Made by a program: the position numbers and the translations under genes. Of a DNA stretch of 64,000 bases, positions 41,509-45,745 are shown piece by piece. Under the pieces are notes generated by a model, which saw only the letters and a list, made by a program, of their open reading frames with translations, did not search any database and had not been told where the DNA came from. Source of the stretch: Paraphysomonas bandaiensis (Eukaryota; Protista; Chrysophyceae); NCBI GenBank assembly GCA_965644295.1, contig CBFFRP010000096.1, positions 81,344 through 145,343 of the forward strand, read 5' to 3'. Positions within the stretch are counted from its first letter, which is position 1, and every line of letters begins with the position of its first letter.

Positions 41509-41922
41509 CATACATACATACATACATACATACATACATACATACATACATACATACATACATACATACATACATACATACATACATACATACATACATA
41601 CATACATACATACATACATACATACATACATACATACATACATACATACATACATACATACATACATACATACATACATACATACATACATACATACATA
41701 CATACATACATACATACATACATACATACATACATACATACATGCATACATACATACATACATACATACATACATACATACATACATACATACATACATA
41801 CATACATACATACATACATACATACATACATACATACATACATACATACATACATACATACATACATACATACATACATACATACATACATACATACATA
41901 CATACATACATACATACATACA
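41509..41922. repeat. (TACA)n microsatellite, ~410 bp, one CATG interruption near 41743
   Basis: Directly visible. Confidence 0.98.
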
Positions 41923-42257
41923 GCAGAATACCGTAGTTGTGATTCAGTTGTGATTTCAGATGTAGTGTATCTGGGTTTTCGCTGCTGGTTTAAAAATACT
42001 GGAGTTTTGAATAAAATCAACCTATTCTACATATACAATCATAAAAAATTCAATTTCTATATAAAAACCTTCTAATTATTTAAAAAAGTTTTGTACGGTT
42101 AAGTTCATATATAACAAGCTTCAAAAATATTTCTATAGAGAACATACCTCTGTGTGTGTTCTCTATGAATATCCCTGTATAGACCATAGCACACTATACA
42201 GTCATGATAGTCGAATAAATCAGATTGATTCATTCTTTCTATAGTATCAGACGATTG

Positions 42258-45150
42258 ATGCCTCCTGCACGGAAGAAGTTTCGAGGTAATTCATTCTGTC
42301 ATATGATTTATAGAGTCGTATACTGATCTGCTCGTATACCAGCCGCTGCTATTCGATCTGGATACTCATCAGCATCTAAACGAGGTAAAACAATTCATTT
42401 TATTACTGTATTTGTCTTATACGGCTGTGTAGATGCGGCATGTTTGATACCAACCCGCTCTGAGTCTCCACAATCGAATGCACTGTTTCAAAATTATGGG
42501 AATATAACTCCTCGAAAGAAAGTCAGAAGACGATCAATACGCAATAAAGTTCACTGTCAATCTGCTTTACTTACACTTCCTGATGCTTTGTTGGTCTATA
42601 TATTTTCTTTCTTCGTCTGTCCCAATGGTTTGGATATGGATAATTTCCATAACATTCAAGCCGTGAACTCTAAATGTCGAGCTCTCATAAATTCTCCAGT
42701 CATATGGCGTTTTATTCCAATTATTCAGCCTGGAGGAGCACTAAACATAAATGCATTTTTTCTTGTGAAAATGAAAAACAAAGGCACTGAGGGTACCTGC
42801 TACCATACCAGGAGGAGAAGTGACCAGGCAGAAGTAGCTCTGAAGCGGGCGAGGGTTTATCCTGATGTGAGTAACATACTTAATTCTATTTGTCATTCAT
42901 ATTAGCAACGTGTTGTGAGCAGAACGAAGGTGTTCCGTACTACATGATGAGGGAAATATCCGCTCTGAAGAAGCTATCACATCCCAACATCTGCTCACTA
43001 GACCTTGTGAATCTGAGTGACTTTAAACTCTACTTGGGTTTCCGTTATGTAGAGCTTACTCTCCATGATTTGTTATATCCCCCGTCTACATCCGTAGCTC
43101 CCGTAAAGGCAAGCAAGGCTCAGACTCGTGAACTTATGAAGCAACTTGGCGGAGCAGTGGCCTACTGTCATCGGCGAGGAGTTCTGCATAGAAATCTCAA
43201 GCCGAAGCACCTCCTGCTCATTCCGGGTCCAGTCGCAAATGATCCTCTAGGTATGTTTTTTTAAATCCACAAATTATTGATCACTCTCCATGATGGTACA
43301 GAGGGTGCACGCATTCTTCTTTCTGACTTTGCTCTTGTGCGAATGATGAGCAACCCTCCTAAGCGCCTGACATCGGAGGTAATAACTCTCTGGTACCGTC
43401 CCCCTGAAATCCTCATGGGACAGAATAACTACACCGCTGCTGTTGACGTATGGTCGATGGGGTGTATCTTCGCTGAGCTGTTACAAGGCAAGGCATTGTT
43501 CGAGGGACTCTGTGAAGTGGATCAAATATTTCAGATATTTCGAACGCTGGGAACCCCAACCACAGATGTATGGGATGAGTTTAAAAGTATGCCCTACTAT
43601 CAGGACCCTCTTTTTCCGGACTGGCAAAAGGTGGGTATTAGTGCCAACACGGTGCTGTGAGATGATGCTTATTCGTGTTTTATGTAGTCGCGTTTGTGGA
43701 ATATGGTAAGGAATGCCACTGCTGTGGAGTTCGATTTGCTTTCTCAGTGCCTTGTGTACGACCCAAGAAAGCGACTCTCCGCTGCAGAGTTTCTCGGTCA
43801 CGTCTACTTCATCGACTCTGATACGTCAGGTAGAAGCTTCTATCGTTACTTCACCATGTTTTTAATTTATAAATTGTTAATTGCAGATTCAACTCCTGCG
43901 AACGATATTATATTGGAATCACCAGGAATTGAATTGTGTGCCGATGGTATGGAAATAATTTTTTTCCTTCTGTATACTAACATGTATCAACTGTATCACT
44001 ACAGCCCTCGTCAATGTACACAAAACCACCCTCCCACACTACGCTTTTTTGCGATCACTAGAGCCCGGTGCAGTTGCCTCTTGCACTAACCACGATGGAA
44101 ATAGGCCCGGAGCGAATGCAATGGGCACAAGTATTACTGATAAAAGAGGGGATCTCGTGTACTCTGAGGAAGATCTGTAAGTACTTAACATTATCGTGTA
44201 CTCGTAATTATTGCTTTTCTGCCAGCGAGGTACGGTCTAGGGCCGTAGAATGGGTCTTCCACGTTTCTGGAAGGCGACACGACTCTTCACTCTCTGTGCG
44301 CACTACGTACTTCGCGATAGCTCTTCTTGACGCGTTCTTCTGCTCAACAGCGGGTGATGCGAACAAAAAGGTTTGGACTGCAGTATCTACGTCTAGTATT
44401 GTGGGTGCGTGCTGCATGCATATCGCATCCAAGTGCGAGGATGTGTCGTACGCTGGCATCAGAGATATATCGCGTTCCTTAGATTTTGCGTAAGTTGTTG
44501 TTGCTCTTGTACCCTTCCATATCCTCTTACAGTTGTTTATGCTAGCTACGAGCCAGAAGAGTTCTTGTTGACCGAAGAAGTTATATTGAATACACTCCAG
44601 TTTGATTTTTATATTCCTACTGGTAAGTGCTGGGCTACTATATGATGAATATGCTCATGAAATGATGAAGTGATCGATTTCTTGGGTCTTTTTATGGAGT
44701 GTCTTCCTGAAATATATACGTTGGAGCAGCAGCGATCGCTCTGTCTGGTGAGCTGTATTGTAACTAAACCTTACCTTTAATTAATTATCGCGTAGTATCT
44801 GGGCGAGCTGTCCCTACTATTTACCATATGCATTAGATTCGCCCCCTCTCTGGTAGCAACCACGATTGTGTCATATGCTTTGGGATATACGTCGTCTGGG
44901 GAACGAAACAGGACAAAGGGAGTGTCCTGGGTAAGTTACTGATATTGTGACATCCGTATTTAAAAGCGTTTTTCAGCCTGACTCCCTAAAGAAGCTCTCT
45001 GGTTACTCTTACGAGGAAGATGTGGTCCCTTGTCTACAGTATGTGAGGGAGTCCCAGCGCCTGACTCCATTGCTTCCTTACGCTAGTGGTATTTATACGG
45101 ACTATTCATCCGCCGAAACTCACGGGGTAGCCAGATGGCCACCTCTTTAG
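42258..45150 (+). CDS. F-box / CDK-like (pseudo)kinase / cyclin fusion protein, about 13 exons
   Basis: Manual splicing at GT-AG sites gives one open frame from MPPARKKFR to RWPPL*. F-box LLTLPDALLVYIFSF...VNSKCRALINSPVIWR. CDK VALK, EGVPYYMMREISALK, HRNLKPKH, SDFALVR, TSEVITLWYRPPE, DVWSMGCIFAE, YDPRKRLSA. Cyclin box RSRAVEWV, TTYFAIALLDAF, IVGACCMHIASKCED, EEVILNTLQF, YLGELSL, FAPSLVA. Confidence 0.85.
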
Positions 45151-45745
45151 ATAGTGCGTGGTTATTATCACATAGTTTTCACTCTGTGTTTGTCTGTGAA
45201 CTGTGTACAGTAGATATTCCCCATTGTTTGAATAGCATTAGGTAGATTGCATGCTGTGAAGTACTACTGATGTGGATTTGTACGGTGTCGTTGAATTGGG
45301 TTCAATGGCTGTACAATTTCATGATGAACGTGGCTCATGATAACTATATTCATTATATATATATATTATTCTGATTGATCCTCAGTTTCCTGTTCTTAAT
45401 TGAGAATTTAAAGTTAATATTTTGAAAATTGAATTAACTGGGTGGTCGGCGATGGAGCATGCCCAGTGAAATTTGAAACAGAAACATACTATCCCTTATA
45501 AAGAAAAAACGAATTTATTTAAAAAGTTTAAAATTTCCCCAGAGGTGCATAACGCATTCGTAATAATGAACTCTTGTATAGACGACCGCAGAACCGATGC
45601 ATGTCACTACTCAGACCAAAACTGGATGACTTTCTTGGCCCTCAAAGTCGGACTCGCACGTATTCGTGGTGGTGTTCTGGGGGATAAGTACCGGAGATAT
45701 TTCTTCTTGAAACTAACGTGAACCGCATATATAGTCAGTAGATAG

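Follow-up and report, generated by a model that had tools for sequence, protein, structure and literature searches.

A predicted pseudo-CDK joined to an F-box and a cyclin in one chain of the marine flagellate Paraphysomonas bandaiensis

Introduction

Animal cyclin F (FBXO1/CCNF) is the founding F-box protein and acts as a substrate receptor of the Skp1-Cul1-F-box (SCF) ubiquitin ligase, its targets being bound by the cyclin domain. Fusions of a different kind were described in 2010 by Judelson and Ah-Fong, who reported four Phytophthora infestans cyclin-dependent kinases (CDKs) that carry Cyclin_N and Cyclin_C at the C-terminus, with confirmation by reverse transcription PCR (RT-PCR) (PMC3019232). 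All four carry an Asp-to-Asn change in subdomain VIb and were judged probably inactive, and the cyclin domain was proposed to regulate the stability of the fusion protein (PMC3019232). The same study noted related kinase-cyclin genes in other oomycetes, ciliates and Theileria, found them absent from two diatoms, and listed a methyltransferase-inactive kinase fusion, PITG_14137, among the P. infestans kinome entries (PMC3019232). Here we describe a gene of the chrysophyte Paraphysomonas bandaiensis that encodes an F-box, a CDK1/2-like kinase domain and a cyclin in a single reading frame. It lies on the + strand at positions 42258 to 45150 of a 64,000-nucleotide stretch (assembly GCA_965644295.1, contig CBFFRP010000096.1, positions 81,344 to 145,343), referred to below as the window.

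The fusion gene is real, single-copy and expressed. Its 753-residue product, represented by the public protein P0043, almost certainly is a genuine member of a family of F-box/CDK-like/cyclin fusion proteins in which the kinase is inactive. P0043 belongs to a conserved, mainly stramenopile family with a disordered basic N-terminus, an F-box, an inactive CDK1/2-like domain and an A/B-type cyclin.

Results

The exon model was built by hand from window positions 41800-45600 (+ strand), and its frame was then verified by script. Searches were run exon by exon, with P0043 as the reference for the whole product. The gene is laid out as follows.

42258..45150, + strand: coding region, ATG to TAG, 13 exons and 753 codons (frame and GT-AG check, spliced contigs, identity to P0043)
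42258-42285, 42343-42384, 42433-42866, 42923-43250, 43302-43630, + strand: exons 1-5
43688-43829, 43887-43946, 44005-44176, 44226-44489, 44546-44622, + strand: exons 6-10
44671-44747, 44796-44930, 44977-45150, + strand: exons 11-13
45151..45365, + strand: 3' untranslated region, ending where the contig of run X1 stops at the poly(A) addition site

Joined, the exons give 2262 nt, equal to 753 codons plus the stop, with zero internal stops. All 12 introns run from GT to AG and measure 46-58 nt; their GC content is 0.28-0.44 versus 0.47 for the exons, and retention of 9 of the 12 would bring an immediate translation stop. The initial annotation had proposed that every junction can be spliced at GT-AG sites without a stop, and the intron borders, the 753-codon frame and the RNA contigs described below all bear this out.

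Transcript evidence came from four sequencing runs compared over window positions 41960-45560 (3601 letters). RNA-type assemblies hold 63-66% of the words of this stretch, as expected for a spliced message, and DNA runs hold 96%; poly(A) marine metatranscriptomes are also among the sequencing runs that match it. Run X1 contains a single 2431-nt contig, and run X2, from a separate study, a single 2369-nt contig, and both cover the message between exon 3 and its 3' end, where introns 3-12 are spliced at the predicted sites. The exon 2-3 joint is additionally present in X2, which brings the introns confirmed as removed to 11. The X1 contig stops at 45365 and continues into a poly(A) run of 17 A absent from the genome. 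The passage from kinase through linker to cyclin, marked by joints 43829/43887, 43946/44005 and 44176/44226, recurs in X5, a poly(A) marine metatranscriptome, so that these joints are present in RNA contigs of three runs. In the same window comparison, DNA run X16 showed none of the splice joints. The contigs of two studies thus run through the kinase-to-cyclin region, where the initial annotation had named a transcript end as the result that would speak against it, and neither contig terminates between kinase and cyclin exons.

Reads of the compared runs did not show the joint between exons 1 and 2, which is carried by P0043, a 753-amino-acid open reading frame (ORF) from a marine transcriptome project that is marked complete and maps to window positions 42258-45147. 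P0043 and the spliced model are equal at 752 of 753 residues; the single mismatch is at residue 31, Ser in P0043 and Thr in the model. At window position 42453 the assembly has A (Thr31), and the three covering runs, among them DNA run X16, all read T (Ser31), in agreement with P0043. Either the difference is allelic or the window carries a consensus error here.

Each of the kinase, cyclin and F-box exons occurs only once in the 62.6-Mb assembly, and the closest CDK paralogues in the same genome are only 44-47% identical. Single-copy exons and such distant paralogues indicate that the fusion is old and not a recent local accident.

The domains of the product were placed as follows.

42258..42557, across introns 1 and 2, + strand: basic disordered N-terminal region, residues 1-65 (predicted local distance difference test score, pLDDT, <50; gappy and poorly conserved in the family alignment)
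42570..42713, + strand: F-box, residues 70-117, abutting the kinase N-lobe (Pfam F-box-like, family columns, pLDDT 92-95)
42750..43813, across introns 3-5, + strand: CDK1/2-like predicted pseudokinase domain, residues 130-429 (Pkinase E 8.1e-47; human CDK1 E 3e-65)
43814..44171, + strand: linker, residues 430-510, formed by the end of exon 6 and exons 7 and 8 (pLDDT, secondary structure, family consensus)
44172..44606, + strand: first cyclin fold (Cyclin_N), residues 511-620 (E 2.5e-12 in P0043)
44616..45147, + strand: second cyclin fold (Cyclin_C), residues 624-752 (E 8.9e-13)
~44181-44216 and ~44387-44401, + strand: eroded RxL-docking patch, P0043 residues 514-525 and 566-570

Single exons already carry recognizable domains. 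Exon 3 matches F-box-like at E 5e-4 and 20.2 bits, under the 24.3-bit cut-off; exons 4, 5 and 6 match Pkinase at E 1.9e-14, 1.2e-18 and 1.8e-3, covering profile positions 45-263; exon 9 matches Cyclin_N at E 1.2e-6 and exons 12-13 give a weak Cyclin_C. On P0043 itself Pfam places Pkinase at 140-428, Cyclin_N at 511-620 and Cyclin_C at 624-752. Lys/Arg clusters in the N-terminal region resemble nuclear localisation signals. The linker consists of a low-confidence stretch, a conserved helix (463-479) that leads into the cyclin box, and a disordered insert (479-500).

AlphaFold2 with the family alignment A1 modelled the full 753-residue chain at a mean pLDDT of 83.1 and a predicted template modelling score (pTM) of 0.85, with disorder limited to residues 1-65 and 479-500. 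A pTM of 0.85 for a three-domain chain means that F-box, kinase and cyclin are placed confidently relative to one another in the model. Pfam, AlphaFold2 and transcripts therefore agree with the proposal that one polypeptide holds a complete CDK fold and the two cyclin folds behind a basic N-terminus and an F-box. In Foldseek searches the kinase part superposes on CDK2/CDK3 chains from cyclin complexes at template modelling (TM) scores of 0.89-0.92. We did not accept this list as proof of an active-like conformation, because cyclin-bound CDK2 chains dominate it and the library holds one chain per distinct sequence.

The CDK fold read by the initial annotation is not that of an enzyme-grade kinase. 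In the alignment to human CDK1, four residues are replaced: the first Gly of the Gly-loop, the Asp of the catalytic loop, the Asn that binds Mg and the Gly of DFG. Residues are listed by their CDK1/2 positions or motifs.

Gly11: replaced by Asn139
Thr14: kept as Thr142
Tyr15: replaced by Glu143 (42789-42791, + strand)
Lys33: kept as Lys161
PSTAIRE helix: partly kept as P-Y-Y-M-M-R-E, with Arg178 and Glu179
HRD: replaced by HRN, with Asn259 (His-Arg-Asn257-259; 43187-43195, + strand)
KPxN: replaced by KPKH, with His264 (43208-43210, + strand)
DFG: replaced by DFA, with Ala288 (Asp-Phe-Ala286-288; 43325-43333, + strand)
Thr160: kept as Thr301

The Gly-loop thus reads N-K-G-T-E-G, with Asn for the first Gly and Glu for Tyr15, and nothing remains of the HRD Asp, the KPxN Asn, the DFG Gly or an intact GxGxxG with Tyr15 that characterize a catalytically active CDK. 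The cyclin-binding helix retains the flanking Glu-Gly-Val-Pro and Arg-Glu, with its middle residues changed relative to PSTAIRE. Comparison with 90 relatives showed the substitutions in 86-90 of them: Asn259, His264 and Glu143 occur in every relative that covers the column, and Ala288 in 89/90, next to Asp286 and Phe287 in 90/90. Other positions of the active fold are kept. The pair equivalent to Lys33-Glu51 (Lys161, Glu179) is present, as is the T-loop Thr301 with Arg178, Arg258 and Arg291; in A1, Lys161, Arg178, Asp286, Lys581 and Glu583 are invariant and Glu179, Arg258, Arg291, Thr301 and Glu610 nearly so. Judged by its sequence, the kinase domain is a pseudokinase without the residues needed for phosphotransfer. 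Family-wide loss of the chemistry residues, together with retention of the ATP anchor, the T-loop Thr/Arg set and the cyclin Lys and Glu, fits selection for a cyclin-bound shape and not for catalysis.

Relatives of the fusion were found in two steps. Querying the whole library with a profile of the cyclin exon gave 35 matches, mostly fragments, among them P0012 (727 amino acids) and P0024 (799 amino acids); this cyclin-exon-only search did not recover the cluster of the fusion protein itself. P0012 carries F-box-like (above the cut-off), Pkinase, Cyclin_N and Cyclin_C in one chain, and a search with it yielded 320 relatives, P0043 among them. According to the precomputed Pfam column, F-box-like, kinase and cyclin occur together in at least 46 clusters (46 of the 120 listed), mostly stramenopile. 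Oomycete sources are Saprolegnia, Achlya, Aphanomyces, Pythium, Phytophthora, Peronospora, Bremia and Albugo; others are the brown-alga relatives Choristocarpus and Discosporangium, Chrysoparadoxa, Phaeothamnion, Tribonema, a parmalean and the labyrinthulid Hondaea, with a dinoflagellate among the more distant matches. Relatives bear database names such as "cyclin-dependent kinase with F-box domain" and "Cyclin-F", the latter an automatic UniRef name. The domain search thus confirms the triple architecture that the initial annotation had read from the window, and at the same time removes its novelty, for the architecture is already annotated widely in stramenopile proteomes.

P0043 shows the signature of the family, with the order kinase-Cyclin_N-Cyclin_C, the motifs HRN, KPKH and DFA, and the G-T-E-G loop. 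Its F-box lies directly before the kinase N-lobe, and residues 70-117 align with the family F-box columns. A scan of the 58 members of A1 gave Pkinase, Cyclin_N and Cyclin_C in 58/58, F-box-like in 40/58 (best E 8.5e-12) and F-box in 19/58.

An alignment of the family N-terminal region alone (A2) was used as an F-box profile against the Protein Data Bank (PDB). It matched the Skp2 F-box at E 1e-7, followed by FBXL5, FBXW7, FBXL17 and many other PDB F-box proteins, with cyclin F at 0.046. The F-box signature, consisting of a Pro, a hydrophobic helix and a Leu/Ile-Trp end, is kept across most of the family. Because of the Pfam matches in 40/58 and 19/58 members and the match of A2 to Skp2, the F-box is secure at the level of the family; in P0043, going by the same profiles, it is recognisable and sub-threshold.

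Two Skp1 loci, several cullin genes and a single CKS are present in the same genome. The Skp1 loci (L015, G000:C421:88094-91237; L016, G000:C426:21525-24665) have three exons each; one gene is canonical (C-terminal domain 93.6 bits) and one divergent (54.6 bits). P0043 residues 60-132 were docked against the Skp1 C-terminal exon (helices 5-8). With single sequences and a truncated Skp1, the interface score (interaction prediction score from aligned errors, ipSAE) was 0.39 in three runs, and the best of three controls reached 0.01. The runs share at least 80% of contacts, and the pLDDT of the partner is 66. In calibration of the docking, the mark was reached by 51/78 solved complexes and 2/108 mismatches. 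Given the high prior for an F-box with Skp1, this predicted contact is no more than mildly favourable.

Among solved structures the cyclin part is closest to cyclin A2 (E 2e-15, 59-60 bits), followed by cyclin F (1.4e-8, 37.7 bits) and cyclin B1 (1.9e-7), and the cyclin A2 alignment extends to the C-terminus of the fusion protein. Lys581 and Glu610, both kept family-wide, align with cyclin A Lys266 and Glu295, which we regard as the two residues that contact the CDK when cyclin A is bound to CDK2. The RxL-reading hydrophobic patch persists in most family members, with the consensus R-S-M-L-V-D-W and F-Q-L-L-G. It is retained in oomycete and brown-alga-lineage members.

Upstream of the gene, 336 nt before the start codon, lies a perfect (CATA)n microsatellite of ~103.5 copies (window 41509-41922). 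Translated in several frames, it accounts for long repetitive ORFs in the mechanical ORF list.

Discussion

The cyclin half would dock onto the pseudokinase half of the same chain and create a permanently assembled, chemically silent CDK-cyclin unit. The F-box would plug this unit into Skp1-Cul1-Rbx1, making the protein an SCF substrate receptor whose target-binding surface is the CDK-cyclin unit itself. Candidate ligands are CKS, inhibitors, regulators of the Wee1, Cdc25 and CDK-activating kinase (CAK) type, and CDK substrates. Taken as a whole, a family member that offers an inactive CDK-cyclin unit as an SCF receptor module is probably the best account of the locus. For the narrower statement that the protein does act as an SCF receptor with the inactive pair as its binding module, we put the chance slightly short of even.

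Several observations weigh against the SCF receptor. The F-box-like score of P0043 is 17.7 bits, below the Pfam cut-off of 24.3. The docking ipSAE of 0.39 falls in the range that the docking tool grades weak; the band at or below 0.60 holds only 5/78 solved complexes plus all 4 mismatches that passed. F-box proteins are also able to act outside SCF. A confident one-body fold was obtained from the AlphaFold2 model in which the initial annotation had hoped to see an intramolecular CDK-cyclin interface (pTM 0.85), and the contact itself is argued from pTM and conserved contact residues, not from an inspected interface. In P0043 and its nearest relative P0044 the RxL-reading patch is eroded (V-R-S-R-A-V-E-W and S-S-I-V-G in P0043), which makes the classical docking route to substrates doubtful in this lineage. 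Finally, literature searches for functional work on F-box-kinase-cyclin proteins turned up none, only the 2010 kinome paper (PMC3019232).

The eroded patch also bears on what the protein could bind. It had been suggested that the module captures proteins that dock on CDK-cyclin complexes. The fused F-box, CDK and cyclin domains on which that idea was built are present, and its classical cyclin-docking component is weakened by the loss of the patch. Patch erosion suggests a lineage-specific shift in what the cyclin half binds. A more specific version of the SCF receptor is possible and decidedly speculative: the pseudo-CDK-cyclin unit could serve as a substrate trap used as a degron reader that binds a substrate or regulator of CDKs at the active-site cleft and at the cyclin but does not phosphorylate it. 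If so, SCF would ubiquitinate unphosphorylated CDK targets or regulators (CKS, inhibitors, Wee1/CAK). Such a degradation logic would be opposite to that of classical phosphodegrons and conserved across stramenopiles.

The main rival to an SCF receptor is a protein that acts as a decoy or governs its own turnover. The F-box would then not serve SCF degradation of other proteins; it would cap the N-lobe or destabilise its own chain, and the pseudo-CDK-cyclin would be a stoichiometric decoy for CKS, inhibitors, Wee1 and CAK. That the F-box abuts the N-lobe without a linker and is modelled within the single body at pLDDT 92-95 would suit this rival, as would a P0043 F-box under the Pfam cut-off and weak docking to Skp1. 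For some members, such as P0091 and P0105 of P. infestans (592-594 amino acids), no F-box is listed at all, and a role of the cyclin domain in protein stability was suggested in 2010 (PMC3019232). However, the F-box signature is conserved in most of the family and matches the Skp1-binding F-boxes of solved SCF complexes, which is hard to explain without a Skp1-type partner. We consider the decoy unlikely, if the most serious of the alternatives.

A weakly active kinase would change the function in another direction, as an SCF-tethered enzyme that makes phosphodegrons on bound targets or phosphorylates itself. Lys161, Glu179, Asp286 and Gly141/Gly144 are invariant or nearly so, suggesting that nucleotide binding is kept, and some pseudokinases with Asn for the catalytic Asp, such as HER3, retain trace activity. 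Yet Asp127Asn, Asn132His, Gly147Ala and the change of the first Gly-loop Gly are fixed together family-wide. Oomycete members, moreover, were judged inactive in the 2010 kinome study (PMC3019232), and residual activity appears improbable.

That neighbouring F-box, CDK and cyclin genes were merged by in-frame reading or chimeric assembly, an artefact for which it can be said that contigs by themselves cannot prove a single RNA molecule, is rejected as extremely unlikely, given three spliced introns between kinase end and cyclin start that are all in frame without a stop, an equivalent continuous contig in runs of two studies with the joints also in a poly(A) metatranscriptome, a public ORF of identical length (P0043), and an architecture common to at least 58 relatives with RT-PCR confirmation in Phytophthora (PMC3019232).

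The locus broadens a family known until now chiefly from annotated oomycete genomes; our results confirm and refine a catalogued architecture and are not its discovery. A free-living marine flagellate transcribes a complete F-box/dead-CDK/cyclin chain, which can also be picked up in ocean metatranscriptomes. Conservation within the family is strong, with its catalytic substitutions fixed and the cyclin-bound, substrate-holding architecture preserved. Should these proteins indeed be SCF receptors that read CDK-docking surfaces, they would add to cell-cycle control a layer specific to this lineage, whose members include major pathogens of crops and fish as well as abundant marine protists. In the ESM Atlas, Pkinase and Cyclin_N clusters of 548-563 amino acids are labelled Nucleocytoviricota, and a Pkinase and F-box cluster of 769 amino acids is labelled Chlorophyta. 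Kinase-cyclin and kinase-F-box fusions may accordingly exist beyond stramenopiles, giant viruses included, and these are leads only; a literature search for giant-virus kinase-cyclin fusions found nothing specific.

The closest described proteins are the P. infestans CDK-cyclin fusions, which share 35-40% identity with P0043 over the whole length in A1, an equal domain order, and the catalytic-loop Asp-to-Asn change, KPKH, DFA and the Gly-loop Glu; the 2010 paper differs in leaving the F-box unmentioned (PMC3019232). Oomycete members have a longer N-terminus and a cyclin hydrophobic patch that is kept, whereas P0043 comes from a free-living marine flagellate lineage, has 12 short introns in its gene and has lost the patch. 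Scaffold pseudokinases of the HER3/ErbB3 type offer a parallel for the kinase domain, as they have HRN for HRD, keep the ATP-binding Lys, the Glu and the DFG Asp, and function in allostery or scaffolding. HER3/ErbB3 differs in belonging to the receptor tyrosine kinase group and not to CMGC/CDK, and has neither cyclin nor F-box.

In the SCF(Skp2)-Cks1-CDK2-cyclin A-p27 assembly (PDB 7b5l), an F-box protein, a CDK2-type kinase and cyclin A cooperate in one ubiquitin-ligase-substrate complex, and chains of this structure are matched by our F-box profile (7b5l_T) and by the cyclin part (7b5l_Y). There, however, each component is a polypeptide of its own, bridged to the others by Cks1 and a phosphorylated substrate, and the kinase is active; in P0043 the corresponding parts are covalently joined and the kinase appears disabled. 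Animal cyclin F likewise unites an F-box with a cyclin domain in a single chain and is matched by both the cyclin part (1.4e-8) and the F-box profile (0.046), but it has no kinase domain between the two. Orthology to animal cyclin F was rejected on that intervening kinase and on the scores of the cyclin part (59-60 bits for cyclin A2 against 37.7 for cyclin F). The proposed description of the fusion as a convergent analogue of cyclin F is a fair analogy: since the cyclin of P0043 is closer to cyclin A2 and its F-box closer to Skp2, the likeness to cyclin F is one of design, not of orthology.

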